This document shows positions 13,585-58,138 of a stretch of DNA of 64,000 bases, in pieces. A program made the translations under genes and the position numbers. Under the pieces are notes generated by a model. The model saw only the letters and a program-made list of their open reading frames with translations. It was not told where the DNA came from and did not search any database. The first letter of the stretch is position 1. Every line of letters begins with the position of its first letter. The DNA lies in the IMG/VR virus record IMGVR_UViG_3300047445_000186, positions 248,001 through 312,000 of that record, one strand, 5' to 3'.

Positions 13585-13971
13585 ATGGATGTTCTAATTC
13601 GCCGTCGAGAGATAGACACAACCACCCACGTAGTTGAAGTTCATCTGAACGATGAATGGCTTGAATTCGCGAGGGCTACTGCTGAAGAGCCCGATCACCG
13701 CGAAGCTCATCTCTCGCATGCAGAGCGTGAAGCGTTATCTCGAATGGAGGAACTCGTTCAAGGTCCTCCCGTTCCATTCTTTGTAGGCCCAGTCCTCTGC
13801 TGTGCTTATCATCTGTCTCCCACGATGTTGAAGCATGATCTCGACATGCACGGGGCGGATGGGTTCGCCACGCGACACAATCTACTGATCCACGAGTCAG
13901 GCAGAGAGTTCGAAGAACAATTCAAAGCTTGGTACGACGAGCTCTCTGCGGGGACGTATGGCGGCGCGTAA
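13585..13971 (+). CDS. Hypothetical protein
   Basis: GAGGG SD, AT-rich upstream region. Confidence 0.6.
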   Translation: MDVLIRRREIDTTTHVVEVHLNDEWLEFARATAEEPDHREAHLSHAEREALSRMEELVQGPPVPFFVGPVLCCAYHLSPTMLKHDLDMHGADGFATRHNLLIHESGREFEEQFKAWYDELSAGTYGGA

Positions 13972-16774: not shown

Positions 16775-17218
16775 ATGCGACGTCTGCAGCGACAAGCAGT
16801 AAATAGACCAAACACACGGTCTACTATGTCGCCTACTCAAACCCGAGCGGTTCTAATTCGTCAAGCTGCGTGCGCCGTCCAGGCGCTAGACGCGGATCTG
16901 AACCATCTTCTCGACGCGTACGATTTCTACGTGCAGCGTTTCCCAGATGACAAGGAACTCGCCGATCTGAACGTTTCGATCGACGCTCTCGGCTCGCTTC
17001 CCCTGATCGTTGCGCATCAGCTCACGCACTGGGCGCAGAACGAAAAGTCAGAACTCTCGAGAGATGCTTTCGAGATTGGCGTACTGAACGAATTCTCGCT
17101 CCACATGTTCGCGCTCACGAACTTCATGGAGCGGAAGAACGTTGATGTTCAAGATGTCGTGCCTGAGAAAGTGGCCGACGCTTTCAACGCGCTGAAACTC
17201 ACGAACACAATCCTATGA
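16775..17218 (+). CDS. Hypothetical protein (alternative start 16826 behind late promoter)
   Basis: AAGGA SD at first ATG; TAAATA 16800 plus hairpin before second ATG. Confidence 0.65.
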   Translation: MRRLQRQAVNRPNTRSTMSPTQTRAVLIRQAACAVQALDADLNHLLDAYDFYVQRFPDDKELADLNVSIDALGSLPLIVAHQLTHWAQNEKSELSRDAFEIGVLNEFSLHMFALTNFMERKNVDVQDVVPEKVADAFNALKLTNTIL

Positions 17219-17580
17219 AAGTCACCGAACTGCTTGAGAGCGGCGGTGACCTGCGCGCGAAACTGATCGACAAGATGCGACTCCAGTTCGAGAGGAACGG
17301 GAAGTACATCAATTGTCGCCTTGCTGTGCAGCTCACGGTCGATGTTCCAAAGCTCGAAGAACTGCCGAAAGTGAAGCCGAAAGAGATGATTCTCGGCGAC
17401 ATTCTCGCTTGGGGAATCGCGCACTTCGCGATCTACCTCGGGAACGGCGAAGTTCTCGAAGTCCCAGGCTGGGGCGATCAAGTACAAATCACGCCTTTGA
17501 AGGCCGTTGAAGCGGATTACGACAAGGTCCGCACTGTTTACCGAGTTCCTGCAGATCAACTGCAGAAAGCCCTACAATGA
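17215..17580 (+). CDS. NlpC/P60-like cysteine hydrolase with MKVTELLE leader
   Basis: INCRLAVQ (Cys) then GDILAWG.AHFAIYLGNG (His). Confidence 0.7.
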   Translation: MKVTELLESGGDLRAKLIDKMRLQFERNGKYINCRLAVQLTVDVPKLEELPKVKPKEMILGDILAWGIAHFAIYLGNGEVLEVPGWGDQVQITPLKAVEADYDKVRTVYRVPADQLQKALQ

Positions 17581-18110
17581 AACTACAAGAACTAGCTAGC
17601 GCAGAGCGCTTTAATTCCACCACGCTGCTTGAAAGCGGCAACGCAGCCCTGCGCGCGAAACTCACTGATGATGAGTGCTTAGTTCTTGCGTTATTGATTC
17701 ATGATAAGGGGCACATCATGGCCCGCGGTAATCATGACAGCGATTTAGATAGCGCGATCAGCAAGCTAAAGATGAAGTCTACTATCCCACTTTATCGTGG
17801 CGTGTCTGATAAGGAGTTAGCAGAGATTATCGCTGGTGAAGCTGATCACTATCTCTCCTTCTCAGAAGATCGAAATGTTGCAAAGGGTTTTGGCGCGAAT
17901 GTGATTACGCTAAAGCCTGGGGCTGTGGGTCTCTGTTACTGGAAATGGGGAATCGCAGATAATAAAGCGCTCGCGAAAAAGTATGGCAAGCAATGGGCTG
18001 AGGACCAGGATATTCAGTACATGATCGATTCATTTGAGGAAGAGAAAGAGTGGGTGTTCCCGTTTGAGACACGGTTCACCCAAGTCGGACCTCTAGAGTT
18101 CAAGCAATGA
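17577..18110 (+). CDS. ADP-ribosyltransferase-like protein (R-S-E type) with MKLQEL leader
   Basis: LYRG, YLSFSED, EEEKEW. Confidence 0.75.
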   Translation: MKLQELASAERFNSTTLLESGNAALRAKLTDDECLVLALLIHDKGHIMARGNHDSDLDSAISKLKMKSTIPLYRGVSDKELAEIIAGEADHYLSFSEDRNVAKGFGANVITLKPGAVGLCYWKWGIADNKALAKKYGKQWAEDQDIQYMIDSFEEEKEWVFPFETRFTQVGPLEFKQ

Positions 18111-19363
18111 AACTACAAGAACTAGCTGGTGCAAAGCGCTTTAATTCCACTGAGGGCGGTGGGATCACCGACGCTCTCGATCTTCTTCAAGCCGAATTCG
18201 AAGCTGGCAGAACGTCGCTTCGCATTCTCGGCACTGGCGCGAACGGCGTTGCCCTGACGAATGGCACGAGCGTTTTCAAGTTCTGGCATCGCGATAGCTC
18301 GTACGAGAAGTTCGTGAATTTCTGCCACGAAAACAACAGCCCATTCCTGCCGAAGTTCACGTCAAAGATCAAGAACCTTTCTCCTCGCGTTTTCTATACA
18401 GCGACTGCTGATGAAGACGGCGAGAACATCGTGAAGGGCGTGAAGTACGTGAAGATGGAACTCCTGAAGCCGTACAAGGGCCAAGGCGGTTGCGAGGTCT
18501 GGGCGGACAAGAACATCCAAAAGGCGATCGGTGTTGACGACCCTGAGCTGGATGAGTACGGTGTCGTGAACTTCATGTCGTACGAAGACATCTGGAATTG
18601 CTCAGGTATGTCACGCACTCCTCGCGGCGCATTGATGGAGCTCTTGAGTCATCATGCCTTCCTGAATGATCATCTCGAGTACGAAGAACTGGTTCCATAT
18701 CTCGAGAAGATGAACCGCGAGATCATCGACATGGTCGGTGTTCTCGTGAAGCTTCATACGGTCTTTGGCAAGGAAGATCGACTGGATTTCGGCCCTCGGA
18801 ACATGGCGCTTCGTGGAGACCAAGTCGTGATTCTCGATCCTATCGTGAACGACAATGACATCATCGTGAACAACATGATCATGGACTTGTCGAAGTACCG
18901 GACGCCGCCGAAGATCCAAGAGAGTACCGACACCGATGCCGAGCGTGAAGCTGTCGATGAGTGGATTGAAGCCGCTTATCTTGACGAGCCAGTGATGCGG
19001 AAGTTCCTGATGAAGGGGCTCCCTTCGTTTGGCGAGAAATGCTATCGAGCAGAGTTCGGCTCGAAGGCCAAGAAGTTCAAGGCGCTTCCGATTGGTGAGG
19101 ACGTGGACATGTCATACAAGTCGGCTTCGGCGTCGATGGCTGCGCTCAATAACGGCGTGATCGAGCCGAACGGTGGTGAGCACTGGCTGCTCGAGCTTCG
19201 TATTCCAAGCGGGCTGCGCTGCGGTCGAGACATCAAGCACAGCGATCCCGAGCATCCCGAGAACGTGCAAGAGGAATTCTTGATCGGCCCGGGTGTGAAG
19301 TTCAAGATCATGAAGCAGCTCGCGGATCGAACGATTCTCGTTGCACAGAACTCCATGCACTAA
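18107..19363 (+). CDS. Protein kinase-like domain fused to C-terminal ADP-ribosyltransferase domain
   Basis: LGTGANG, VFK, DFGPRN, ILDP; then CYRA, YKSAS, VQEEFLIGPGVKFKI. Confidence 0.78.
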   Translation: MKLQELAGAKRFNSTEGGGITDALDLLQAEFEAGRTSLRILGTGANGVALTNGTSVFKFWHRDSSYEKFVNFCHENNSPFLPKFTSKIKNLSPRVFYTATADEDGENIVKGVKYVKMELLKPYKGQGGCEVWADKNIQKAIGVDDPELDEYGVVNFMSYEDIWNCSGMSRTPRGALMELLSHHAFLNDHLEYEELVPYLEKMNREIIDMVGVLVKLHTVFGKEDRLDFGPRNMALRGDQVVILDPIVNDNDIIVNNMIMDLSKYRTPPKIQESTDTDAEREAVDEWIEAAYLDEPVMRKFLMKGLPSFGEKCYRAEFGSKAKKFKALPIGEDVDMSYKSASASMAALNNGVIEPNGGEHWLLELRIPSGLRCGRDIKHSDPEHPENVQEEFLIGPGVKFKIMKQLADRTILVAQNSMH

Positions 19364-19389: not shown

Positions 19390-20679
19390 ATGAAAGTCAA
19401 CGAACTATTTGAAGCCCGTCAGCTCCGTGAAGGATCCTGGTACGACGACTTCCGCCCAGAAGATACCGTCCCGTCCCAAAAAGACAAGGGATGGACGGGT
19501 CGTCATAAGGTGAAGGAAGACGACGGAGAGACGTACGAAGACCTGAAGTATGAAGGTCGAATTCTTCTCCATTACGATGCTCCTATCAAGACGCATGGTC
19601 TTGATCAAGCAGCCGTTAAAGAGGCCTATGAGAAAGCGAAGGCTAAATTCTTGGAAATTCGTGCCGCGCATCCAACGCAGCTTCGCTTTAAGACTTCCGT
19701 TGAAGCCACAAAGTACATGAAGACGATGGAGTACCCTGGTTGGACTCTCGTCGTGCAGTATGCAAGGCTGAACTGGGGATCCGGAGGATACAAGTACGCA
19801 CAAGACCTCGAGTACAAGACGCCTCGCAAGGTTAAGACGCTCGACTTGCCAAAGCAAGAGTTCAAACCAAAACACGCCGAGAACGCGATCAATGCGGAAA
19901 TGGACGGCGATAAGGTCAAGCTCAGCATTGACGTGAAGGTCGGTCCTCTGATGTCTGCATTCATCACGACGGTTTATAACGTCGGCGATAAAATGAAGGC
20001 AAAGATTCTTAACGTTAAGGGCAAGGTCCTTGACTATGATGATCTCTATCGCTCACGCCCACAGAAAGTTTGGGTGACCACTACTGATCTGGATCGTGTG
20101 AAGGCGATCATCGCGAAGAAGCATGCTGACCGCGTTGAGGATGAGAAGGCAGATCACGACAAACTGCAGAACGCTTTGACTGACCGCAAAGAAACCAGCA
20201 AATGGCGAGCTGACGATCAGAAGCAGCGAAAGGCTAAACTCCACGCAACATACGGTAAGGAAATCGTCGATCGTGTGAAGATCAAGTCTATGAGCATGGA
20301 AGGTGATGATGGTTATCAATGGGCTCTGTTCGTTGATGGACGGCGCAAGAAGTCAGGTCTGACTAAGTATCAAGCAGAGGGTGAGCAGCGTATCATGTGG
20401 CGCTGGCTGAAAGAGTACGAGGACATGACTCCTGAGCAGCGGCTGCAGCACGCTCAAGAACTTGAAGGTATTCGCCTGTACTTCATGATGGACGCGATTG
20501 AGAAGTCAGTTGGCGCGCAACTTCCACAGTATCTGAACGCGATCAAGAAGAATGCGAAGGACTTCGTTGATGCGAAGCAGGCAACTAAGGACGCGATCGA
20601 AACTTCGAAGGTCTCTGACGCTCAAGCAAAGAGCATCTTTAATGACCTGATGAAGCGCATGGGCGACAAGCTGGACTGA
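19390..20679 (+). CDS. Late hypothetical protein, probable internal head protein (MKVNELFE leader)
   Basis: TAAATA 19361; highly charged; LFE/LRE sites near N-terminus. Confidence 0.7.
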   Translation: MKVNELFEARQLREGSWYDDFRPEDTVPSQKDKGWTGRHKVKEDDGETYEDLKYEGRILLHYDAPIKTHGLDQAAVKEAYEKAKAKFLEIRAAHPTQLRFKTSVEATKYMKTMEYPGWTLVVQYARLNWGSGGYKYAQDLEYKTPRKVKTLDLPKQEFKPKHAENAINAEMDGDKVKLSIDVKVGPLMSAFITTVYNVGDKMKAKILNVKGKVLDYDDLYRSRPQKVWVTTTDLDRVKAIIAKKHADRVEDEKADHDKLQNALTDRKETSKWRADDQKQRKAKLHATYGKEIVDRVKIKSMSMEGDDGYQWALFVDGRRKKSGLTKYQAEGEQRIMWRWLKEYEDMTPEQRLQHAQELEGIRLYFMMDAIEKSVGAQLPQYLNAIKKNAKDFVDAKQATKDAIETSKVSDAQAKSIFNDLMKRMGDKLD

Positions 20680-20797
20680 TCCCGAAATCCGAGTGCACTC
20701 GGACTCCTCCGTGATTAAATAAGAACTGGTGCTGATGAGGCACCTTTTCTTTTACCTGCGAACAGTGGGTACCTATCACAACCTCGGAGTACGAGAC

Positions 20798-21613
20798 ATG
20801 TCAGACCGCACCACCATCGGTGATCGGATGAAGAGCTACGAAGCGCCTTCAACGACCCGCAAAGCTTTCAAGGGCCAGCCCCTCATTGTCCGCCTGGACG
20901 GAAGCTCATTCCACAAATTCACCAAGGGCATGAAGCGCCCATTCGATCTGGTTCTGAGCCAGCTCATGATCGACACCATGAAGTCCATGGTCGAGCGATA
21001 CAACGCGAACATCGGGTACACGCAATCGGACGAGATCACGCTCGCCTGGTACATGGAGCCATTCGAATCTCGCGAGCTCGAGTTCGGTGGCCGCTTCCAG
21101 AAGTTCGAAAGCGAACTTGCTGCATGGTGTTCTGTGAAGTTCAACTCGCTCCTTCGCGAAACCGAGTACGCCAAGAAGGCAGAGATGCTGCCGTACTTCG
21201 ATGCTCGCGCGTTCGTCGTGCCGAACTTGACCGAAGCGATGCACTGCTTCCTGTGGCGCCAGCAAGATTGCACGAAGAACGCGATCAGCATGGCCGCTCA
21301 GTCGATGTTCTCGCACAAGGAACTGCAAGGGAAACATGGGCCTGAGATGCAGGAGATGATGTTCCAGAAGTTCAACGTGAACTTCAACGACTACCCTTCG
21401 CACTTCAAGCGTGGCACGTTCGCTCGACGCGTGAAGCGCGAGTGGTTCCCGTCCGATGCAGAGATCGAAGCGATTCCGGAGAAATACCGGCCAAGTGGGC
21501 CAATCCTCCGCTCGTTCGTGCAGACCGAAGACATCTGGCTATCGAAGCAACCGAGCGGAACGCAAGCTCTGTTCGGTGACGCACCGATCGTTACAAATGT
21601 TACGGTGTCATGA
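20798..21613 (+). CDS. tRNA(His) guanylyltransferase Thg1-like protein
   Basis: RMKSYE, IVRLDGSSFHKF, YTQSDEITL, FDAR, WRQQDC..NAI. Confidence 0.92.
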   Translation: MSDRTTIGDRMKSYEAPSTTRKAFKGQPLIVRLDGSSFHKFTKGMKRPFDLVLSQLMIDTMKSMVERYNANIGYTQSDEITLAWYMEPFESRELEFGGRFQKFESELAAWCSVKFNSLLRETEYAKKAEMLPYFDARAFVVPNLTEAMHCFLWRQQDCTKNAISMAAQSMFSHKELQGKHGPEMQEMMFQKFNVNFNDYPSHFKRGTFARRVKREWFPSDAEIEAIPEKYRPSGPILRSFVQTEDIWLSKQPSGTQALFGDAPIVTNVTVS

Positions 21614-35050: not shown

Positions 35051-35311
35051 ATGGAAATCCTAATCGAATCTCTTGGTTGGTTGGGATCTCTATTCCTTGC
35101 GATCTGTGGCTTCCCACAAGCGTGGATGTCATTCAAGCAAGGACACTCGGACGGAGTGAGTAATGGTCTGCTGTTCTTCTGGGGCGGCGGAGAATTGCTC
35201 ACTCTGTTCTACGTGCTATCCCTCGGGAACGCACCACTGATCATGAACTACGTTTGCAACATGGTCTCCATGAGTGTGATTATCTGGTACAAGTTTAGGC
35301 CGAGAAAATGA
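35051..35311 (+). CDS. PQ-loop / SemiSWEET-like 3-TM membrane protein
   Basis: GWLGSLFLAICGFPQAW..SDGVS; three hydrophobic segments in 86 aa. Confidence 0.75.
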   Translation: MEILIESLGWLGSLFLAICGFPQAWMSFKQGHSDGVSNGLLFFWGGGELLTLFYVLSLGNAPLIMNYVCNMVSMSVIIWYKFRPRK

Positions 35312-35685
35312 TTGCAGTTGGCGATAAAGTAATTGCGAAGATCGACATCACGCAAGGTGCTGATGAAGACGGGCCTGCCCAAGTGTTCGCCACGAAGGGC
35401 ACGCCTCTCGTGGTCAGGCGAATCGGTCAGCAGTGTCTGCACGTATCGCACGAGGACATTACTGATCAGTCGTTCAGGGTGTTCGACGGCGAAGTGATTG
35501 ATTTTCTGCCTGATGGGAAACTTACATACGCAGTCACGGTCCAGAAGTGGGAACGAGTTGCGAAGATCATTCGCGAATTCAAGAAGAAGAAACACGTTGG
35601 ATACTTCCTGGACGTGGAAGAGCTGCCATCATCGGTGTCTCCTGAGTTCGCTTATTACCGGGTCTGGGTGTACAAGGAAGCGTAA
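35308..35685 (+). CDS. Hypothetical protein
   Basis: ATGA overlap. Confidence 0.6.
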   Translation: MIAVGDKVIAKIDITQGADEDGPAQVFATKGTPLVVRRIGQQCLHVSHEDITDQSFRVFDGEVIDFLPDGKLTYAVTVQKWERVAKIIREFKKKKHVGYFLDVEELPSSVSPEFAYYRVWVYKEA

Positions 35686-35711
35686 ATACAATCTTGAACT
35701 GAAGGATTGTT

Positions 35712-36596
35712 ATGCGTCTCGACGAACTCGCCGGTGTAAAGAAATTCCAGCGACTACAGTGGCATCAAATCACGCGTCTGCTTGATCGGAAATTCGGCAT
35801 CAAATACATTGGTGGCGGAAAGTACGGTCAGGTTTTCACGCACCCGGGCTGGGACTACGTCGTGAAGATCATGGAGCGCGAGGACCCGAACTATCTGGAG
35901 TTCGTTGACTTCGCGCTGAAGCATCCAGACAAGCATTATCCGAAGATCATCAAGAAGCCTTTCATGATGCACGCTTTTCACAAGCGTGAACGCAGCCAGA
36001 AGTACCAACGTCTGACTGTCCTGAAGATCGAGAAGCTTCTCCCGATCGAGAAGAACAAGCTTGACTTCATTGTTCAGAACCTGGATCAATACGCCAGCAT
36101 CGTCACTCGGTACAAGAACAACGAGTACAAGCACGAGAAGAACCAAGAGGCGTACACGCAAAAGCATCCACACCACACGAAGGTCTTGCCTGACGGCACA
36201 AGTGAACAGAACCTGTCGTACAAGGACATCTTCGATCGGTACCCATGGTTCGAGGATCTGTGCTGGGCATTCCGCCGGATCATGGACAACTCGGAGTACG
36301 GGTCGGCCGATATCCATGGTGGGAACTTCATGGAGCGGAAAGACGGCACCGTCGTGATCATCGATCCGCTGTGGGAAGGATACAACTTCGAAGCTGCTGC
36401 ATGGCAGGCCGAGATGGCTGAACGCGGCGACTACTGGGGCGACTACGAAGAGCACATCCCAATGGTCAGCGGCCCCGGGTATGACAGTGCACGCAAGCGT
36501 GAAGAACAAGAAGCGCTCGAGAAGAAGGAAGCCGAAAAGGCGGCCAGGATTGCTGGCGTGTTCGCGCACAATTTCGACGACGATATTCCGTTCTGA
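35712..36596 (+). CDS. Protein kinase-like protein with MRLDELAG leader and SSB-like C-terminal tail
   Basis: IGGGKYG, VVK, DIHGGN, IIDP; ends NFDDDIPF; TAAATA 35683. Confidence 0.8.
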   Translation: MRLDELAGVKKFQRLQWHQITRLLDRKFGIKYIGGGKYGQVFTHPGWDYVVKIMEREDPNYLEFVDFALKHPDKHYPKIIKKPFMMHAFHKRERSQKYQRLTVLKIEKLLPIEKNKLDFIVQNLDQYASIVTRYKNNEYKHEKNQEAYTQKHPHHTKVLPDGTSEQNLSYKDIFDRYPWFEDLCWAFRRIMDNSEYGSADIHGGNFMERKDGTVVIIDPLWEGYNFEAAAWQAEMAERGDYWGDYEEHIPMVSGPGYDSARKREEQEALEKKEAEKAARIAGVFAHNFDDDIPF

Positions 36597-39209: not shown

Positions 39210-39279
39210 GGGCTTTAGAGTCATACTTCTCGCTGCTAAATAGTCCTCAGAGGGCCACGTCGTGGCCGCAGAGGACTCC

Positions 39280-40503
39280 ATGACATCTCCGGTCGATACA
39301 TCCGTCAAATCTTTCGATAGCACCATGCTCGGTGCTCCAGCCCTGAGTGGTACTGCTGGCACCACAATTGGCGTGCTTGATGCTTGCTTGGTGAACGGGT
39401 TCGACACACGTGCTGCTTCATCTATCGTTGTTTCAGGTGGTGTGGCTACGGTGAGCTACTCGGGTGCAGTGCACTCAGCTCGGTTGAACAGCGTTATTCT
39501 CGTGTCTGGCGTGACTGACATCACGTCGTTGAATGGTGAACAGAAGATCACGGCAGTCGGTTCTGGCTTCGTGAAGTTCGCGACAGCGGCCTCGCCAGGT
39601 ACCGCAACCGGCACGATCTCGTTTAAGATGGCTCCACTCGGATGGGTGAAGCCCTTCAATGGTACCAATATCGGCGTGTACCAGTCGAGTGACATCACGT
39701 CAACAAAGTGCTACCTTCGCGTTGACGATACTGGTACCCAGACATGCCGCGTTATGGGGTACGAAACCATGACTGACGTGAACACTGGACTTGGTGGATT
39801 CCCGCTGTCTGGTCAGATTCTTGGTCCTGTCACAGGTGGTGGTTGGTGGTACAAGAGCGCTCAGGTCAACTCGACCCCAGTTGTGTGGTCTATTCACGGT
39901 GACGGCAAGATCTTCTACATCAACATTCAGATGGGAACTAGCACGAACGCCTCGTATCAAATGACGTCTGGGCGTGTGTTCGGTGATCCAATTCCGTACA
40001 GACCTGGCGGCGATCCATACTGCTGCATTTTGAACTATGCCACTGCATCTGGTGGTATGGCCGGTGGTGTTGGAAATACGTACAGCTCATCTGCAAATTG
40101 CTCATTCGCGACACCTCGCGATTTCACTGGAATTGGATCCGCAGTTGGGAACTTCTTGATGCAGTTCGGAATCCCAGTAGGCTCTAACTCAAATTCAGGA
40201 ATTACGAACTTGGCTGGGGCATTCCCATCGTACATCGATGGAAGTCTTTGGTTGTTCCAGAAATTTCTTGCCGCAACTTCAACTGGCATGCCGCGGGCGC
40301 TCATGCCAGGTCTTTATATTTGCGGGCAGTCTAGCATCTATAACAACTTTAAGCAGGGCGATACGACCCCAGGCACAGGTGCTCTTGCTGGTCGATGGCT
40401 ACGTGCAGCAACGTCAAATGATGATGCAACCGTGCCGAACACGGCAAGCACAACGGCGAACACAGGTATCATTTTCTTTGATGACACTGGGCCGTGGAGA
40501 TAA
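39280..40503 (+). CDS. Tail-fibre-associated structural protein, paralog A1
   Basis: MTSPVDTSVK..LDACLVNG..APLGW..DDTGPWR; late promoter 39237. Confidence 0.75.
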   Translation: MTSPVDTSVKSFDSTMLGAPALSGTAGTTIGVLDACLVNGFDTRAASSIVVSGGVATVSYSGAVHSARLNSVILVSGVTDITSLNGEQKITAVGSGFVKFATAASPGTATGTISFKMAPLGWVKPFNGTNIGVYQSSDITSTKCYLRVDDTGTQTCRVMGYETMTDVNTGLGGFPLSGQILGPVTGGGWWYKSAQVNSTPVVWSIHGDGKIFYINIQMGTSTNASYQMTSGRVFGDPIPYRPGGDPYCCILNYATASGGMAGGVGNTYSSSANCSFATPRDFTGIGSAVGNFLMQFGIPVGSNSNSGITNLAGAFPSYIDGSLWLFQKFLAATSTGMPRALMPGLYICGQSSIYNNFKQGDTTPGTGALAGRWLRAATSNDDATVPNTASTTANTGIIFFDDTGPWR

Positions 40504-40506
40504 ACA

Positions 40507-42720
40507 ATGGCTGCGCATCGATACTGGCGCATCACTGGTCTTGAGGCCTTTGCAGGTGCAGATCTTGAACTGAGTGAATTTCAGCTCCTGAACGGTGCCA
40601 CTCGCGTTGATGCGTCTGCAACGCTCACATGCTCAAACTCACCAGCAATTGGCGCAGTTGCGAACATCCAAGATAACAATCTGAGCACGTCTGCGTACTG
40701 GCAAAAGGCATCTCTTGTCGGGCTTACGCTGAACTGGGACTTTGGTGGATCGCCGACTCAGGTGAATGATATTCGGATTGCTGGTGGTGACAGCGCACTG
40801 ACGTTCCCGCTGTATGCTCGGCTAGAGTACTCGGACGATAACGTTGCGTGGATCGTGCAGTACACGTACGGTGGTATCACCTGGCCAGGCCCGCGCACGC
40901 TGACTTCATCTGGGACATTCTTGACTAATGGCGGGGTATGCACCTGCTTGTTGCACTTCGACGGTGTGAACGGTGCTACCACAACAACTGACAGCAGCTC
41001 AATCGGGGCGACCGTCACGTTCAACGCGATGGCAATTTCCACGACCTTGTCGATCTATGGTGGCTCTTCACTGTCTCAAACTGGAGCTCGCGGGTACATT
41101 AGTCTACCAGCTAATACTGCGTACGTGCCAGCGGGCGATTTCTGTATCCAGGGCTGGTTCCGAAATGCTGCAGCGGGTGGCGGCAGTACCCTTGTTTTGT
41201 ACGTCAAGGGATCAATTTCGGTCTATTCTTACTTGGTATTTGTGAATGGCAACGGGTATCTGCAGGCCAACATCTTCGGCACCGGCGGCAGCGTTGCGCT
41301 GCTCGCCCCTTCACTATGGGCAACAAATACCTGGTGTCATGTTGCGGTGACTAGACAAGGTAACGTTTTTAGACTGTTCGTGAATGGTTTAATTGTAAGC
41401 ATAATCACGGCGCCGAGTTCATTTGGCGCCTTAGTCGCTAGCGCAGGTCCCCTCAGTCTCGCTAATGACACGGCGGGGACATATGGTTGGGGCGCTGTTC
41501 CTGGCTATATCGACGAATTTCAAATCATTAATGGCGCGGCAATTTACACGCAGGCCTTTACTCCGCCAGCCGCCCCCTCAACTGCTACCGCAATTGACCA
41601 AGTTCAAGGTATTCTTCAGAACCTCGGCGGTGGCCGCGTAGCGAGCGGGAACAATCTCGTTCTCCCAAGCGTGATTGGGAGTTCCCTGGCGTCATATGGC
41701 GCGAGCAGTCAACCGCCGAGCGCGTTCATTCGTGGTCGAAGAGACTACGTGTACAACGCGAATGGATACCAAGGTCTCATTGACGGGATCGTCGATTACA
41801 AGGCGACCCCGTTTAATGTGCCTGTCTCGCGGCGCGTCCGGCTTCACCGACAGGCAGATGGTTTGTTGATCCGCGAAGTGTTCAGTGATCCAATCACTGG
41901 CGAGTACAAGTTTGATTACATTGACGAGACACAGAAATACTTTGTGTGCAGTCTCGATCACACTGGCGCTTTCCGTGCCGTGATCAGCGATAATCTGACA
42001 CCGACAATTATGAGTGGTGCACCGATCGCGTATCCACCTGCGCACTACAGAAGCGTCGGTCCTGTGGCAACGTACCAGGCCGGGCCGGGCACTACAGTTG
42101 TCCCTAGCACTCCTACTGGGATGACTGTTGGTGATCTCATGATTGCCAGCATTGCGAACATGATCTGTACCGTGACGCCTCCAGTAGGATGGACATTGGT
42201 GAATTCGTACAGCATGAATAATGGCGCAAACACCCAACAGGTTATGCTAAGTGTGTACAGCAAGTATGCGACCTCTGCAGACGTTGCTATTGCGGCGCAT
42301 ACTTTCAGTTTCAGCGCCACGAGTACACAGGGCGCAACTGGAGTTATCACCGCGTTCTACAACCCAGCAGGGCTTCCAGTTGTTGTTGACACGTCTGCAG
42401 TGAACGGGTATTTGGTCGGGAATGCATCCACCCCACCACAGCAGTCGCAGACGATGATTTTCACGCCAATGCGAGTAACGAACAATAATTCGCACATCAT
42501 GCTCGTTACCGCTCAAGCGTTCATGGGTACAACGTTCAATGCAGGCACAGGTCTGATTCTCAGAGCAGGAAGTACAGCAGGCGGGATCGGTGTCTGCACA
42601 GGTACCAGCAATCTGCAAAGCGGGTATGAGAACGGCGTTGGGTACAATGGGTACATGATGACATGGAATAACGTCGCGACGCAGCCGGCGATCGGCATTG
42701 GTCTGATTTTGACGACATAA
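40507..42720 (+). CDS. Tail fibre / receptor-binding protein B1 with LamG-like domain
   Basis: MAAHRYWR start; WCHVAVTRQGNVFRLFVNG..GYIDE. Confidence 0.75.
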   Translation: MAAHRYWRITGLEAFAGADLELSEFQLLNGATRVDASATLTCSNSPAIGAVANIQDNNLSTSAYWQKASLVGLTLNWDFGGSPTQVNDIRIAGGDSALTFPLYARLEYSDDNVAWIVQYTYGGITWPGPRTLTSSGTFLTNGGVCTCLLHFDGVNGATTTTDSSSIGATVTFNAMAISTTLSIYGGSSLSQTGARGYISLPANTAYVPAGDFCIQGWFRNAAAGGGSTLVLYVKGSISVYSYLVFVNGNGYLQANIFGTGGSVALLAPSLWATNTWCHVAVTRQGNVFRLFVNGLIVSIITAPSSFGALVASAGPLSLANDTAGTYGWGAVPGYIDEFQIINGAAIYTQAFTPPAAPSTATAIDQVQGILQNLGGGRVASGNNLVLPSVIGSSLASYGASSQPPSAFIRGRRDYVYNANGYQGLIDGIVDYKATPFNVPVSRRVRLHRQADGLLIREVFSDPITGEYKFDYIDETQKYFVCSLDHTGAFRAVISDNLTPTIMSGAPIAYPPAHYRSVGPVATYQAGPGTTVVPSTPTGMTVGDLMIASIANMICTVTPPVGWTLVNSYSMNNGANTQQVMLSVYSKYATSADVAIAAHTFSFSATSTQGATGVITAFYNPAGLPVVVDTSAVNGYLVGNASTPPQQSQTMIFTPMRVTNNNSHIMLVTAQAFMGTTFNAGTGLILRAGSTAGGIGVCTGTSNLQSGYENGVGYNGYMMTWNNVATQPAIGIGLILTT

Positions 42721-42769: not shown

Positions 42770-43975
42770 ATGACATCTCCAGTAGATACATCCGTAAAAT
42801 CATTCGACTACTCAATGTTGGGAGCGGCTGCCCTGAGCGGCACGGTCGGCTCGTTGTTGCCAATTCTTGACCAATGCCTGGTGAATGGGTTTGACACTCG
42901 AGCAGCGTCAAGCATTGTCGTTTTTGGCGGGATCGCGACAGTAAGCTACACCGGCATTACGCACTCTGCGCGTTTGAACTCGGTTATTCTCGTGACTGGT
43001 GTGACTGACCTTACGGCCCTGAACGGAGAACAGAAGGTCACCGCCGTCGGCTTCGGTTTCATTAAGTTCGCAACCAGTGTTGCGAACGGTACCGCGACCG
43101 GTACGATCTCGTTCAAGATGGCTCCACTTGGATGGGCGATTGCGCAGACAGGTACTAATCTTCGCGCGTACAAATCGACCGATGTTACATCGACCGGCTG
43201 CATTCTTCGTGTCGACGACACCGTTGCCACGTCGTGCCGTGTCGTTGGATACGAAAGTATGACCGACATCAATACTGGTCTTGGCGCATTCCCGACTGCT
43301 TCGCAACAGCCTGGCGGCGGGTACTGGGTGAAGAGCATTACGGCCTCGGCGGGTACTGTCCTCTGGTCTATCCATGGGGATGGGAAGGTGTTCTACCTGA
43401 ATGTTCAGCCTGGTAGCGTTTCTGGCGCAGGTTTTCAGATCACTTCTAATCGTATGTTCGGAGACATTATTCCGTTCAAACCGGGTGGTGATCCTTATGC
43501 GTGCGTAATGAACTACTCGATCACGTCAACGATTGGCGCGATGCACGACGCCGGTGTTGGTGGGTCGGCTGTCACTCAGTTCGCTCAACCACGCGACTTC
43601 ACGGGGCTTGGATCAGCGGTGATCTCGTTTATCTACCCGTACAACGGCACGACTCTGAACACAATTTCCGGCATTACCTCGATTGCAGGTCCATTCCCAT
43701 CTCAGGTAGATGGTGGCATTTGGTTGAGCTCAAAGTATCTGAACACCACCACCAGCGTTGGCATGCGTGGTCAGCTTCCAGGCGTATTGCACTGTGGTCA
43801 GAGCGGGGTATGGGCCTCGTTTAAAATGGGTGACACGACGCCCGGCTCTGGCCCCCTCGCCGGGCGTTCGCTGCGCGCTACAACAGCAGGGCACGATACG
43901 ACAGGTAGTAACACCACCTCGTCAACTGCAAACACCGGGATCATGTTCTTCGACGACACTGGGCCTTGGCGATAA
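42770..43975 (+). CDS. Tail-fibre-associated structural protein, paralog A2
   Basis: Colinear with A1; late promoter 42730. Confidence 0.75.
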   Translation: MTSPVDTSVKSFDYSMLGAAALSGTVGSLLPILDQCLVNGFDTRAASSIVVFGGIATVSYTGITHSARLNSVILVTGVTDLTALNGEQKVTAVGFGFIKFATSVANGTATGTISFKMAPLGWAIAQTGTNLRAYKSTDVTSTGCILRVDDTVATSCRVVGYESMTDINTGLGAFPTASQQPGGGYWVKSITASAGTVLWSIHGDGKVFYLNVQPGSVSGAGFQITSNRMFGDIIPFKPGGDPYACVMNYSITSTIGAMHDAGVGGSAVTQFAQPRDFTGLGSAVISFIYPYNGTTLNTISGITSIAGPFPSQVDGGIWLSSKYLNTTTSVGMRGQLPGVLHCGQSGVWASFKMGDTTPGSGPLAGRSLRATTAGHDTTGSNTTSSTANTGIMFFDDTGPWR

Positions 43976-43978
43976 GCA

Positions 43979-46900
43979 ATGGCTACGCACAGATATTGGC
44001 GCGCTAAAAATCTTCAGGCGTACGGCGCAACCGGCCTAGACATCACTGAGTACCAGCTTTTTGTTGGCAGCACACGTGTTGACGGCCCGGCGACGCTCAC
44101 CTCCAACATCGCGCCATCAACTGGTTCATTGTCATATCTGCAGGACGGGCTAGCTACGAACAGCGCAATCTGGCTAGCAGCTGATGTTCCCAAACTCGTG
44201 CTCTCGTGGGACTTTGGTTCGACATCCGGTAACTGGGTTGATGTGAATGACATTCAGCTCGGTGGTGGCGCGCTTCGGCAGAATTTTCTGGCGTTCTCCA
44301 CTCTTCAGTACTCGGATGATGCCAGCACTTGGACAGATGCATTCATTAGCACTACGAACGGCTATGTTGCGGGTGCGTACGCGTGGCCTGGAAGTTTTAC
44401 GGCCACCACGAGTAGACCATTCTCGTACAATAGTCTGACAGTGTTGCTTCACGGTGATGGTACTGACGGTGGGACCACGTTCACGGATAGCTCAACGAAC
44501 GCATTCACGGTCACCCCCACAGCTACAACAACAAGTGCAACGCAGAAAAAGTTTGGTACGACTGCGCTTTCGTTCAATGGCGCGACCTGTAAGCTGTTGA
44601 TCGCGCACAACAATGCGTTGGTTCCGAGTGGAGATTTCTGCATTCAGTGTTACGTATGGGTTGCTTCTGCGACGGCTGCGACTCATCGATTCATCGTGAA
44701 CAAATCGATCTCAAGTGGAGTCTGTCCATACGCATTTGCTGTGATGTCGACAGGTGTGTTGTCTGCTAATTCATACAACGCGGCTGGCACGTCGATGGTG
44801 AACTTCACCGCGACTCAGTTAATCACAGCTCAGACTTGGACACACGTAGCGTTCACACGTCAGGGCTTGATTTACCGTATTTTCATGAATGGTCAAATCG
44901 TTGCGCAGGCAACGGCGCCATCAACTGGCGCGCTGTACAACAACAATACGCACCCGATGTGTATTGGGAACGTGTCAGACAGCATTTACCCTATGTTTGG
45001 AACAGGTGGTACCGGGTACATTGACGAGTTCTCATTTGATGCGAACAACGCTGTGTACACTGCGCCATTCATTCCACCTGCGGCTCCAGGCTCAGGTGGT
45101 GGAATCGTGCTTACGAACAATTTCGCGATCTCATCTCCGACTGAGCCGTCTACGGTAGGAAATGGTGTATCATCGTATGGCGTATCAGCGGTGTCAATTG
45201 CGCCGGAAACGGTCGCAGATGTTATCGCCATGTCAGCGCCAACAGTGTACGGTGTAGCTCCACCTCCAGTTTTCTTTGGTGTCAGCACGACATTGATGCT
45301 CTCATATGGTGCTGGACTGCGAGCGCCTAATAACACGCGTGGTCGAAATGATTTCGTCACTGGTGTTCTCGGCTCTGGCGTCGGACGAATCGACGGTGTT
45401 GTGCAAGTTCCTGGTACGCCAAATCAGCCAGTGAAGCGTCGTGTTCGTCTGTACAGGCAAGAAGACGGATACCTTGTGCGCGAGGCCTGGAGTGATTCAA
45501 GCACTGGGGCGTTCTCATTTGACTACGTTGACGAGAAACAGCTGTACTACATCTGCGCATTTGACCACACGAATGCGTTCGTTGGGCTGATCGCTGACAA
45601 CTTAACGCCATCCCTGCTTGAAACTTCTACTGTTGACGCATACGCAGGTGCTCTGAAGAGACTGATCACGATCACTGGCGCAGGTGGTGCAGGTACAGGA
45701 TACGCTATGTTGTTCAAGATTGGGGAGAGCAGCGGTTCTGCCGGCTCCGATTTCAACCTTGAAGCTGTTACAACGACGTTCCCACTTGATAAGAACATCC
45801 CTGGCGATGTGCAGTTCACTGACGTCAGTGGAAGCCCGCTTCCACAGTGGGTCGAGCAAGTCACCGGGACGGCACCGAATCGTGTTGCATGGTTCTGGGT
45901 TAAAGTTTCGGCCGATCTGAGTACAACGCAGTCGATTTACTGCACGTACCGGAATGGTATGAGCACCGCAAGCAATGGCAATACCGTGTTCCTGTTGTTC
46001 GATGACTTCGATGACGGCACGCTCGATACTGGAAAGTGGTCGAACGTCACTGGATCAGGCAGTTATGTAATCTCCGGTTCTGAATTCGTACTCACCGGTA
46101 CTGGTGTTGGTCGCGCGCTTTATTCGGCCACGACGTTCGGTGATGGAATGGAAGTGGTTGGTAAGGTCGGACCATCGGCTACCTCGCTGAGCTACAACGG
46201 TAAGTTCGGTTTCGAAACGCAGTACATCTTCCAAAATGACTGGGACAGCCAAGGATCATCGGAAGTTGTAGTTGGCCCATCGACTAAGACACAACTTGAC
46301 GCGCGCTATCAGACCACGTATTACAGAATGCGAATCCGGCGTGCGGGTGGCGCAGGTAGCATGTTGGTCAATGACGTGGTGAAGCATACACAAGGTTCTG
46401 GGATTGGGACTTCATCTGTGCCAGTTTGGCTGATGAACGTGTATGACGCCACTGTTGCCGGTAAGGTTGATTGGATCGCAGTCAAGAAGTACATGCTCAC
46501 CGAGCCTACGTACTACTCGGCCGACACCTCCATTCCTGCGGCGACTACCGTGATCAACATGACTTTCGATACCGGGAACGGTTCGACTACGTTCACGGAT
46601 ACTGGTTCACAAGCATCAAGTTGGCAGATCGGTACGGGCGCGGTTCAGTGTTCGACGACAGCGGTTCTTGAAGGCGTTTCATCGCTCTTTGTTCCTGGTG
46701 GTGGCTTCGCCTATCTGTACACTACAGCGTACTCCGCGAACATGCTTCCAGCTACCTCAGACTTCTCGCTGAAATTCAAGGCGCGTTCGTCGTCATGGCT
46801 GCGCTTTGACGCTTCTGGGTGCTATTTGATCTCGATTCAGGGCGCGGTAGGAAATGGAGCAGACACGCAATTCGCGATCGCAACGAATCTGAATACATAT

Positions 46901-47170
46901 CTGGCATTCGCGTATAGTGACGGCACGACGCGTTCAGCAGTGACTGGGACTACTCCTGTCCCGGTGAATGTGACCGTGTCATTCGAGTTCAAGCGAGTAG
47001 GCAGTACACTCTCATTGCTGATGAACGGCGTGCTTCAATGTTCTGCTACTCTGTCTGGCGCGTTGAACGTGCCGTCTGGTCAGCAGTGGCGAATCGGTGC
47101 ACCGGCCGGTGCACAAGGCGGTGCATTTAACGGGATGTATTTCGACTCGCTCTCGCTTACTGTTGGTTAA
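43979..47170 (+). CDS. Tail fibre / receptor-binding protein B2 with LamG-like and DUF2341-like domains
   Basis: MATHRYWR start; WTHVAFTRQG; DVQFTD..LPQWVE..AWFWVKV..IYCTY. Confidence 0.75.
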   Translation: MATHRYWRAKNLQAYGATGLDITEYQLFVGSTRVDGPATLTSNIAPSTGSLSYLQDGLATNSAIWLAADVPKLVLSWDFGSTSGNWVDVNDIQLGGGALRQNFLAFSTLQYSDDASTWTDAFISTTNGYVAGAYAWPGSFTATTSRPFSYNSLTVLLHGDGTDGGTTFTDSSTNAFTVTPTATTTSATQKKFGTTALSFNGATCKLLIAHNNALVPSGDFCIQCYVWVASATAATHRFIVNKSISSGVCPYAFAVMSTGVLSANSYNAAGTSMVNFTATQLITAQTWTHVAFTRQGLIYRIFMNGQIVAQATAPSTGALYNNNTHPMCIGNVSDSIYPMFGTGGTGYIDEFSFDANNAVYTAPFIPPAAPGSGGGIVLTNNFAISSPTEPSTVGNGVSSYGVSAVSIAPETVADVIAMSAPTVYGVAPPPVFFGVSTTLMLSYGAGLRAPNNTRGRNDFVTGVLGSGVGRIDGVVQVPGTPNQPVKRRVRLYRQEDGYLVREAWSDSSTGAFSFDYVDEKQLYYICAFDHTNAFVGLIADNLTPSLLETSTVDAYAGALKRLITITGAGGAGTGYAMLFKIGESSGSAGSDFNLEAVTTTFPLDKNIPGDVQFTDVSGSPLPQWVEQVTGTAPNRVAWFWVKVSADLSTTQSIYCTYRNGMSTASNGNTVFLLFDDFDDGTLDTGKWSNVTGSGSYVISGSEFVLTGTGVGRALYSATTFGDGMEVVGKVGPSATSLSYNGKFGFETQYIFQNDWDSQGSSEVVVGPSTKTQLDARYQTTYYRMRIRRAGGAGSMLVNDVVKHTQGSGIGTSSVPVWLMNVYDATVAGKVDWIAVKKYMLTEPTYYSADTSIPAATTVINMTFDTGNGSTTFTDTGSQASSWQIGTGAVQCSTTAVLEGVSSLFVPGGGFAYLYTTAYSANMLPATSDFSLKFKARSSSWLRFDASGCYLISIQGAVGNGADTQFAIATNLNTYLAFAYSDGTTRSAVTGTTPVPVNVTVSFEFKRVGSTLSLLMNGVLQCSATLSGALNVPSGQQWRIGAPAGAQGGAFNGMYFDSLSLTVG

Positions 47171-56935: not shown

Positions 56936-58138
56936 ATGACATCTCCAGTCGATACCTCAGTTAAGTATTTCAGCTCGAATATGCCGAACGCTCCAGTGCT
57001 GAGCGGCACTGCCGGCGCGCTGATTGCATTGCTGGACGCTTGTCTCAAGGACGGCTTCAACTCGATTACACCGACATCGATTGTGGTCGCTGGAGGTATC
57101 GCTACTTTGAGCTGGGCCTCTGGTACGTTCGCGGCACTGCCAGACTCGGTAGTGCTGATTGCTGGCGTGACCGACAAGACCGGCCTGAACGGTGAGCAGA
57201 AAGTGCTCACCAAGAGCGCGCTGTCAATCACGTTCGCAACTGCTGAGACTGCTGGCACTGCAACGCTCTCCGCTGCCACGGTGAAGATCGCGCCGCTTGG
57301 ATGGCTGAAGCCTCAATCAGGTACCAACCTTGCAGCGTACCAATCAAGTGATTCACTGTCTACCAAGATGCTACTGCGTGTTGATGACACCGGAACCACG
57401 ATGGCCCGCGTTGTCGGATACGAGTCCATGACCGATGTGAACACTGGAGTGAACCCATTCCCTTCAGCGGCTCAGATGTCAGGTGGCGGTTATTGGTCGA
57501 AGAGCGTGAATGCGAGCGCCGCTACCGTGAATTGGTCCTTGCATGGCGATGGAAGAATCTTCTATCTTAACGTTCAGCCAGGATCGTCGAACGCTTTGGT
57601 GAATCAAATTTGTTCAGGCAAGGTCTTTGGAGACGTGATTCCGACCAAGCCGGGCGGAGACCCTTATGCCTGCTGCCTGAACTACGCCCAGACCGCAACG
57701 ATTGGTAACCAGACCGATGGCGCGTTCGGCGCGTCTGGCGACTTCAAGTTCGCCATGCCTCGCGATTTCACAGGATTGGGGTCTTCAGTGATGTACGGCG
57801 CGTGGACTTTGACTGGAAATGGCGGAGTTTCAGGTCTAGCGAACGCCCTTGGCTCGTTCCCTTCCCCAATTGACGGCGGCCTTTGGCTGTGCAAGAAGTT
57901 CCTGTACACTTCTATTCTCAGTTCCCCTCGTGCCATTTTCCCAGGCCTCCTGAACGTCGTCCAGTCTGGCGTTTGGAATTCCTTCAAGCAAGGAGACTCA
58001 GTGCCGGGGTCTGGGATTTACGCGGGTAAGAACCTGATGGCGGCAACGACATCTGACAACTCGACGGCGTTCACCACAGCTTCTACTGCAGCTAACACTG
58101 GCATCATCTTTTTCGACGTCACAGGCCCTTGGAGATAA
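56936..58138 (+). CDS. Tail-fibre-associated structural protein, paralog A3
   Basis: MTSPVDTSVK..FDVTGPWR, colinear with A1/A2. Confidence 0.75.
   Translation: MTSPVDTSVKYFSSNMPNAPVLSGTAGALIALLDACLKDGFNSITPTSIVVAGGIATLSWASGTFAALPDSVVLIAGVTDKTGLNGEQKVLTKSALSITFATAETAGTATLSAATVKIAPLGWLKPQSGTNLAAYQSSDSLSTKMLLRVDDTGTTMARVVGYESMTDVNTGVNPFPSAAQMSGGGYWSKSVNASAATVNWSLHGDGRIFYLNVQPGSSNALVNQICSGKVFGDVIPTKPGGDPYACCLNYAQTATIGNQTDGAFGASGDFKFAMPRDFTGLGSSVMYGAWTLTGNGGVSGLANALGSFPSPIDGGLWLCKKFLYTSILSSPRAIFPGLLNVVQSGVWNSFKQGDSVPGSGIYAGKNLMAATTSDNSTAFTTASTAANTGIIFFDVTGPWR

Follow-up and report, generated by a model that had tools for sequence, protein, structure and literature searches.

Why should a phage protein kinase end in the six residues that bacterial SSB uses to dock repair and replication enzymes? 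The question arises from the gene 35712..36596 (+) of a 64,000-bp stretch of a giant uncultured phage (IMG/VR record IMGVR_UViG_3300047445_000186, positions 248,001 to 312,000), referred to below as the window; other window genes are designated by their start positions. The original prediction described kinase motifs, a leader similar to that of the kinase encoded at 18107, a charged linker and a C-terminal FDDDIPF, and proposed that SSB mimicry steers a possibly injected kinase onto host replication, repair or DNA-sensing defence proteins. The described features are all present in the sequence. The proposed meaning is only partly supported. The features of the locus and of the genes considered with it are as follows.

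35701..35706 (+), Shine-Dalgarno-like GAAGGA, 5 nt before the ATG.
35712..36596 (+), coding sequence of the 294-aa kinase, from ATG to TGA, stop codon included; the identical protein is found on a 331,776-bp IMG/VR contig.
35712..35747 (+), N-terminal leader MRLDELAGVKKF, residues 1–12, containing an L-x-E motif.
35757..36425 (+), protein-kinase-like catalytic domain, about residues 16–238.
35811..35828 (+), glycine-rich loop GGGKYG, residues 34–39.
35865..35867 (+), beta-3 lysine K52, within VVK.
36309..36326 (+), catalytic loop DIHGGN, D200 to N205.
36363..36368 (+), D218-P219 within IIDPLW (residues 216–221), the DP motif that replaces DFG in T7K-type kinases.
36468..36482 (+), conserved SGPGY motif, residues 253–257, after the kinase core.
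36483..36569 (+), mixed-charge linker predicted to be helical, residues 258–286.
36570..36593 (+), SSB-Ct-like tail NFDDDIPF, residues 287–294, followed by the stop.
18107..19363 (+), paralogous kinase (418 aa) with the same leader, no SSB tail and an extra C-terminal region of unknown type.
17577..18110 (+), Alt-like ADP-ribosyltransferase (177 aa) with the leader.
35051..35685 (+), two small genes (86 aa and 125 aa) that, together with the kinase, form an insertion relative to Ralstonia phage RsoM2USA.

We first asked whether the protein is a kinase. Searches of Pfam and NCBIfam gave no significant family, and a PDB sequence search gave only marginal matches, in which the stretch around D200 aligned with the catalytic loops of NEK1 and 7wj6. 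In contrast, residues 16–220 matched PHROG 15752 at E 2e-10. Comparison of the family profile with T7 gp0.7 (T7K) by hhalign gave a probability of 35% with a shallow alignment (A1) and 97% with the deep alignment (A2), E 6.8e-11, the latter only over the N-lobe. Hence the protein is a distant relative of the T7 gp0.7 kinase. Across 132 diverged family representatives E107, D200, N205 and D218 are invariant, and G36, K52 and P219 are at least 90% conserved. The residue after D218-P219 is L, whereas the motif of T7K homologues is described as DPV/DP (PMC13645617). G254 and P255 of SGPGY are invariant in A1, and G254 is at least 90% conserved in A2. The AlphaFold2 model has a pLDDT of 91.7, exceeding 90 over the catalytic domain. 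All top-50 PDB fold matches are kinase-fold proteins, though with low TM values of 0.25–0.34, and the best of them are aminoglycoside phosphotransferases, so that the fold alone does not prove a protein substrate; phosphorylation activity was not assayed. In BFVD there were 41 matches at E<=1e-3, led by Autographiviridae protein kinases. After the kinase core there is only a roughly 55-residue extension with no domain, so the C-terminal shut-off/DNA-binding (SO) domain of T7K is absent, and the C-terminus of T7K is unrelated. No OB fold is present, since the whole ordered part is a kinase domain; the protein is therefore not an SSB.

The family comprises 2433 representative clusters and has no Pfam or NCBIfam model. 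DNA and tblastn searches of 50,697 cultured phage records with four queries (the window kinase, two diverged family members and the paralogue 18107) gave no match. The paralogue is a true one (hhalign against A2, 98.5%); its C-terminal part had no family hit, and assignment of that part as an ADP-ribosyltransferase found no support.

The tail is identical to the bacterial SSB C-terminal hexapeptide DDDIPF, described as highly conserved (PMC5872125), and this is the only ORF of at least 50 aa in the window with an acidic xPF end. Absence of the tail from homologues had been named in advance as grounds against the idea, and this condition clearly fails: the tail is kept by 8 of 9 close homologues and by 54–61% of a very diverged family. 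Of the best 157 family proteins, 83 end in PF with D/D/D/I at positions −6 to −3, the logo being D-D-D-I-P-F. To exclude bias from the tail columns of the search profile we rescored the proteins with the kinase core only, and the fraction was 54–61% at any score cutoff. The tail is present in both deep halves of the tree, with 10 state changes against 42.6 in shuffles (0 of 500 as low). Thus, the tail is far beyond chance. On the other hand, about 40–45% of the family, including one 43-member clade, works without it; the tail-less clade ends just after the SGPGY motif.

The segment preceding the tail is unalignable and varies from 18 to 51 residues in length. In many family members it is strongly basic (K 15.6%, R 8.1%, with many K/R/P runs), whereas in the window protein it contains 7 basic and 7 acidic residues out of 29. 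A flexible spacer, as in SSB, would agree with the drift of this segment, but in the window protein residues 257–286 are modelled as a confident long helix rather than a disordered chain, and the two observations leave the flexibility of the spacer undecided. The last 8 residues are non-helical, and residues 291–294 have the lowest pLDDT in the protein (59 on average), as expected for a free motif.

Injection of the kinase, suggested as a possibility in the original prediction, has indirect support. The leader matches MKLQELAGAKRF of the 18107 gene at 8 of 12 residues. In total, six window genes carry it: besides these two it was found on unrelated genes 17215, 17577, 19390 and 55703, of which 17577, 19390 and 55703 are not kinase homologues. 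Gene 17577 (phrog_832, RNA polymerase ADP-ribosylase, E 2.6e-7) shares 13 of 15 leader residues with the 18107 kinase and nothing else. As the leader also heads non-kinase proteins and has low model confidence (pLDDT 66), we rejected the possibility that it is part of the kinase fold. The possibility that it is an RNA or DNA element was rejected as well, since the upstream DNA is not conserved; the motif is at the peptide level. L-D-E occupies residues 3–5, and [LIV]-x-E lies directly before x-x-G-V-K in 77 of 157 family members. This fits, as a sequence match only, cleavage after Glu by T4-type prohead proteases (PMC9026906); there are no virion data, and cleavage and packaging are untested. 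One family member, P0088, is fused to a gp21-type prohead protease. Such a protease was not seen in the window, and the rest of the genome was not searched for it, but relatives (Xoo-sp13, Stenotrophomonas CM1 and RAS14, Munch) have one. Two other members are fused to ART-PolyVal (P0071) and GNAT (P0045) domains.

The gene lies in the replication module, between FEN and the homologue of g36697 and near PolB, the clamp, primase and DnaB. By tblastn, the order PolB, clamp, g33637, FEN, g36697 is shared with RsoM2USA, with nothing between the last two in that phage. In another jumbo phage (L001) the kinase is not near replication genes.

The explanation we favor, with a probability of about 0.5, is that the gene encodes an active protein kinase of the T7K superfamily, probably Ser/Thr and probably promiscuous, and that the tail is a short linear motif that docks it onto proteins with SSB-tail pockets. 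T7K steers itself with a C-terminal DNA-binding domain, whereas this protein has a helical or disordered linker ending in a copy of the SSB tip; jumbophage homologues have lost the domain, and their targeting is described as open (PMC13645617). In this view, the tip, with its free carboxyl end, would insert into the pockets that hold SSB in ExoI, RecQ, PriA, RecG, RecO, UNG, RNase HI, DnaG and the Pol III chi subunit, or in any phage-encoded protein built to read the host SSB tail. The kinase would be tethered to the ssDNA-processing machinery, and those proteins would be phosphorylated preferentially. It may also be loaded into the capsid through its leader and delivered with the DNA, so that it could act from the first moments of infection. 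The paralogue in the same genome lacks the tail, so the tail differentiates the paralogues. T4-type jumbo phages use gp32-type SSBs (PMC7824862) and no other window ORF has this tail; it therefore resembles the SSB of the host rather than a phage SSB seen here. The analysis itself demonstrates the kinase homology and fold, the intact catalytic set, and the identity and deep conservation of the tail, whereas binding to SSB-tail pockets, steering of substrates, the identity of the partners and packaging are our inferences. Neither binding nor docking was assayed or computed, and it has not been shown that the tail binds any SSB partner, that the partners are host rather than phage proteins, that docking directs phosphorylation, or that defence proteins are targets. 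The host is not known; the nearest cultured relative by PolB is RsoM2USA at 47%.

The implied uniqueness of the tail was too strong a claim. A scan of IMG/VR showed it on dozens of non-SSB phage proteins, and its carriers are mostly replication and recombination proteins (SSBs, SF2 helicases, an AEP primase and DUF669-like proteins), along with many small proteins of 70–150 aa with no recognisable enzyme domain. Its general role in phages may thus be recruitment to a replication hub rather than targeting of enzymatic modification. The tail might tether the kinase to the replisome of the phage itself (PolB, clamp, primase, helicase or FEN, or phage proteins reading the host SSB tail) and so regulate phage replication. 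The position of the gene and the set of tail carriers, which suggests a phage-side hub reading the SSB tail, favor this possibility. However, the kinase sits in a three-gene insertion absent from the syntenic site of RsoM2USA, its location differs in L001, and the motif is identical to the host consensus rather than to a phage-specific variant; we consider this reading unlikely, though the strongest of the alternatives.

Somewhat less likely, the tail acts independently of catalysis, either as a decoy competing with host SSB for its partners and so disabling repair, restart or nuclease pathways, or as a hook recruiting a host factor. The small tailed proteins indicate that the tail alone seems useful to phages, but in this family it co-occurs with a fully conserved catalytic set, a stoichiometric decoy would need high copy number, and the fusions to ART-PolyVal and GNAT point to enzymatic action on targets. 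About equally doubtful is an intramolecular role, in which the acidic tail folds back on a basic surface or on the basic linker until released by DNA or a partner, as the acidic tails of SSB, gp32 and gp2.5 fold onto their DNA-binding sites. Autoinhibition by acidic tails is established for SSB-type proteins, and the basic linkers of many family members would suit it. Nevertheless, electrostatic autoinhibition would not need the precise I-P-F end, which is the most conserved part, the model does not place the tail confidently on the domain, and the linker of the window protein is not basic. The least likely alternative is a small-molecule kinase of the APH or choline-kinase type, or an inactive pseudokinase scaffold. 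The PDB fold matches and the absence of Pfam and NCBIfam hits speak for it, whereas the sequence-level homology and the best viral fold matches are to T7K-type phage protein kinases, and the invariance of the catalytic residues excludes a pseudokinase.

Among known systems, T7K and its homologues (PHROG 2828 and 15752; PMC13645617) share the kinase-like fold, the G-loop, the beta-3 lysine, the D-x4-N loop and the DP motif. T7K is a phage-encoded host-takeover enzyme, and in both cases a C-terminal appendage after the kinase domain is expected to bias an otherwise promiscuous kinase toward DNA-handling proteins. The similarity is remote, and here the appendage is a linker plus a six-residue motif, a leader is present, and the source is a jumbo myovirus rather than a member of Autographiviridae. 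The SSB tip and the phage SSBs or DUF669 proteins that copy it (PMC5872125, PMC13687109) have the identical terminal hexapeptide after a poorly conserved spacer, but the present carrier is an enzyme with no predicted ssDNA binding. Hence the tail would bring a catalytic activity to SSB partners, not partners to ssDNA. With T4 Alt and the internal proteins, which are capsid-targeted, protease-processed and ejected (PMC9026906, PMC9958956), the common feature is a short N-terminal peptide shared by unrelated proteins and ending in a Glu-containing motif, although the leader sequence is unrelated to that of T4. ART-PolyVal and GNAT domains are typical of injected polyvalent proteins (Iyer et al. 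2017, PMC5512222; PMC7824862), but the window protein has a single domain and only its relatives are fusions. As in eukaryotic kinase docking and viral mimicry of short linear motifs, a short peptide outside the catalytic site would determine which proteins the kinase meets; here the motif sits on the kinase and copies the tail of a bacterial hub protein. We found no report of this for a phage kinase in the literature searched, and a search on names of the tail returned nothing relevant.

T7K was recently shown to disarm many defence systems by mass phosphorylation, steered by its DNA-binding domain (PMC13645617). A six-residue copy of the SSB tip would be a second, minimal and portable solution, addressing an enzyme to the whole set of SSB partners. 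If so, it would predict a defined substrate set and a targeting that depends on eight residues or on the terminal Phe, link phage kinases to replication, repair and ssDNA-sensing defences, and suggest that SSB-tip tagging is a common phage device not seen by annotation pipelines. More tentatively, a very large, so far uncultured kinase family may use exact mimicry of the SSB tip to home onto the bacterial SSB interactome, arriving with the injected DNA owing to a capsid-targeting leader, and phosphorylating and disabling nucleases, helicases and restart or sensing proteins that meet incoming or replicating phage DNA. This would be one case of a general, undescribed strategy in which dozens of unrelated phage protein families are tagged with the SSB tip. 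The evidence does not exclude this possibility, but we consider it doubtful.

A promoter scan around the gene found nothing, and there are no tRNAs in the window. We also attempted to link one tail variant to a host. Family member P0034 ends in DDPPPF and is encoded on a contig with 60% GC, which was suspected to be an actinophage. This was not supported, as its baseplate protein resembles those of Sinorhizobium and Agrobacterium jumbo phages, that is, phages of Alphaproteobacteria and not of Actinobacteria.

The open reading frame at window positions 35712..36596 (+) is real: it encodes a protein of 294 aa, has an ATG start and a TGA stop, and is preceded by GAAGGA five bases upstream of the start. 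The following features were found in the protein.

Residues 34-39: GGGKYG
Lysine K52: the last residue of VVK
Residues 200-205: DIHGGN
Residues 216-221: IIDPLW
Residues 253-257 (window 36468-36482): S-G-P-G-Y
A 29-residue stretch with 7 basic and 7 acidic residues
Last eight residues: NFDDDIPF

The first 12 residues match those of the 418-aa protein encoded at 18107 at 8 positions. No other ORF of at least 50 aa in the window ends in an acidic xPF tail. Hence, the kinase motifs, the leader similar to that of the 18107 kinase, the charged linker and the terminal tail described in the original prediction are all present, and the observation is confirmed.

The identical protein lies on a 331,776-bp IMG/VR contig. 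The window encodes a family-B DNA polymerase, a clamp-like protein, a FEN-type exonuclease, a primase, a DnaB-type helicase, an RNA ligase, a Thg1-like enzyme, an SLT transglycosylase, and baseplate and tail genes. The polymerase is nearest to that of Ralstonia phage RsoM2USA (47%), followed by Xanthomonas and Stenotrophomonas jumbo phages and Rak2/GAP32-type phages, so this is an uncultured jumbo myovirus, probably of a beta- or gamma-proteobacterium. The G+C content is 53-56%, and no tRNAs were found in the window. The order PolB, clamp, g33637, FEN, g36697 is kept relative to RsoM2USA, the nearest cultured phage. The kinase and two small genes at 35051 and 35308 (an 86-aa protein that looks hydrophobic by eye and a 125-aa protein) form an insertion between FEN and the g36697 homologue (window 35051-36596 compared with 13707-13783 of the RsoM2USA locus). 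Elsewhere in the window there are three paralogous copies of a phrog_9998 / tail-assembly-like gene (39262-40503, 42770-43975 and 56936-58138), two of which are each followed by a baseplate-wedge-like gene (40507-42720 and 43979-47170). These look like repeated tail-fibre or adaptor modules.

Searches of Pfam and NCBIfam returned nothing for the protein. In contrast, PHROG 15752, annotated as the T7-type protein kinase, matches residues 16-220 at E 2e-10, and a profile of 132 family representatives aligns with T7 gp0.7 (T7K) at 97% probability, E 6.8e-11, over the N-lobe. Across those 132 proteins, which are 22-45% identical to the query, E107, D200, N205 and D218 are invariant, whereas G36, K52 and P219 are at least 90% conserved. 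D218-P219 corresponds to the DP(V) motif that replaces DFG in T7K homologues, and the valine is reported to be less conserved in jumbophage homologues (PMC13645617). With the deep alignment, AlphaFold2 gives pLDDT 91.7 and pTM 0.83. All top-50 PDB fold matches are kinase-fold proteins (aminoglycoside phosphotransferases, p38, PknB, PKR, ERK2), although the TM-scores are low, 0.25-0.34. In BFVD, 41 matches reach E<=1e-3, led by proteins named protein kinase from Autographiviridae (Pantoea SK1, Klebsiella NahiliMali, Pectobacterium Q19, Yersinia fPS-53) and Ralstonia phage RSB1. The protein is thus a member of the T7K-type kinase superfamily by catalytic motifs, profile homology and fold. It lacks the C-terminal (SO) domain of T7K, which ends differently, and it is not an SSB. 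Some relatives of 400-1021 aa (family members P0029, P0038, P0079, P0137 and P0142) contain up to nine tandem matches to the kinase N-lobe in a single polypeptide and end right after a DP motif. They look like repeated or concatenated kinase modules.

Absence of the tail from homologues had been named in advance as an outcome that would count against the original prediction; the tail proved to be conserved far beyond chance. Eight of the nine closest homologues (39-45% identity) end in D/E-D-I/V-P-F, whereas the segment before the tail differs in both length and sequence. A profile search of 1.84 billion representatives found 2433 proteins at E<=1e-3 and 771 at E<=1e-10. Among the best 157 proteins in hand, 83 end in PF. 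The counts are D 42 at position -6, D 58 at -5, D 60 (E 15) at -4, and I 54 (V 12, F 5, L 3, M 3) at -3, while positions -7 to -10 are not conserved. This logo is the SSB-Ct hexapeptide DDDIPF, described as highly conserved (PMC5872125). We tested whether the tail columns of the query affect the fraction of tail-bearing proteins. Re-scoring with a profile of the kinase core only leaves this fraction at 54-61% at every cut, so the tail columns did not create it. One family member, P0034 (contig L004, 10001-10918), ends in DDPPPF instead. It sits on a 60% GC contig whose baseplate protein is nearest to those of Sinorhizobium and Agrobacterium jumbo phages, and we have no explanation for the variant.

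On a tree built without the last 12 residues, the tail requires 10 changes against 42.6 for shuffled labels (0 of 500 as low). It occurs in both deep halves of the tree (45 of 54 and 31 of 78), and one 43-member clade lacks it. The simplest reading is an old feature that has been kept under selection and lost a few times. A conserved [VI]-S-G-P-x-Y motif in the low-complexity region after the kinase core (residues 253-257) is also kept in the tail-less clade, whose proteins end just after it; it may be a second short motif or an autophosphorylation site. In the AlphaFold2 model residues 257-286 form a confident helix, the last eight residues are non-helical, and the final four have the lowest confidence in the protein (pLDDT 59).

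A previous study showed that T7K is a hyperpromiscuous kinase that gains preference for nucleic-acid-binding proteins through a C-terminal DNA-binding domain, and that jumbophage homologues have lost this domain, their targeting being unknown (PMC13645617). SSB is not mentioned there. We propose that the SSB tip replaces the lost domain: as a free C-terminal motif, it would dock into the pockets that SSB partners use for SSB, and that would concentrate the kinase on the ssDNA-processing machinery. While the kinase homology and the conservation of the tail come directly from the analysis, this step is inferred. In its favour, the match to the host consensus is exact, and the I-P-F end is the best conserved part. 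Moreover, the paralogue at 18107 in the same genome lacks the tail, and a second jumbo phage likewise has a tail-bearing kinase next to a tail-less paralogue. In this 346-kb contig (L001, 9187-10810 and 16779-17285) the paralogue is recognized by hhalign at 97.6%, and a dual-specificity phosphatase (DSPc) gene lies about 6 kb away. T4-type jumbo phages use gp32-type SSBs (PMC7824862), so the tail looks like the host's SSB. Other explanations considered were docking to the phage's own replisome, a decoy independent of catalysis, an autoinhibitory acidic tail, and a small-molecule kinase. The original prediction that SSB mimicry steers a possibly injected kinase onto host proteins is partly supported. 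Literature searches found no report of a phage kinase with an SSB tail; what distinguishes this protein from T7K would be a host-hub motif serving as its addressing device.

As for injection, the leader is a module of its own. Six window genes of unrelated families, starting at 17215, 17577, 18107, 19390, 35712 and 55703, begin with M-[KRL]-[LV]-x-E-[LI]. By a hand estimate, this pattern should occur about 0.02 times by chance in a window of this size. The genes at 19390 and 55703 are not kinase homologues, the upstream DNA is not conserved, and a non-kinase gene in another jumbo phage (L001, 8824 (-)) has the leader too. The following genes belong to, or adjoin, the leader-bearing block.

17577-18110 (+): Alt-like ADP-ribosyltransferase of 177 aa (phrog_832, E 2.6e-7), directly upstream of the 18107 kinase gene and overlapping it by 4 nt; the two proteins share 13 of 15 leader residues and nothing else
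18107-19363 (+): second kinase of the same family (hhalign 98.5%) with a C-terminal extension of roughly 140 residues of unknown type and no SSB tail; an ART-like domain was suspected in the extension, but no support was found
20729-21613 (+): Thg1-like tRNA-His guanylyltransferase (Pfam Thg1 at 1.6e-27, phrog_4717 at 4.6e-71), directly downstream of the block

In the kinase family, [LIV]-x-E lies directly before x-x-G-V-K in 77 of 157 proteins, with the Glu at residue 5 in 49 of them and at residues 6-29 in the rest. The leader fits a capsid-targeting or propeptide signal cut after Glu. Studies of T4 provide the parallel: a capsid-targeting sequence of roughly 10 residues, a 7-residue N-terminal propeptide on the ejected ADP-ribosyltransferase Alt, and prohead proteases that cut after Glu (PMC9958956, PMC9026906). 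Packaging is therefore plausible but unproven. Fusions within the family point the same way. P0088 is a kinase fused to a Peptidase_S77 prohead protease, and its protease part matches the head maturation proteases of Xoo-sp13, Stenotrophomonas CM1/RAS14 and Munch. P0071 is ART-PolyVal plus kinase plus tail, and P0045 is GNAT plus kinase plus tail. ART and GNAT domains are typical of injected polyvalent proteins (PMC7824862).

We also scanned IMG/VR for DNA encoding DDDIPF followed by TAA and found at least 119 stretches (loci L013-L131), from which 116 ORFs were recovered. None of them is a kinase. Prophage DUF669 proteins with this motif have been noted before (PMC13687109). The SSB tip is therefore a widely re-used tag in phages, and the kinase stands out because it would bring a modifying enzyme, rather than a DNA-handling protein, to the SSB partners. 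Among the ORFs of at least 60 aa 43 clusters were found, and only the largest (32 ORFs) is canonical SSB. The others include SF2 helicases (L059:942-2771), an AEP primase (L124:4519-6078), Pam3 gp34-like proteins (L128:9669-10490), DUF669-like proteins, and several families of small unknown proteins, among them families of 75-aa and 80-150-aa proteins.
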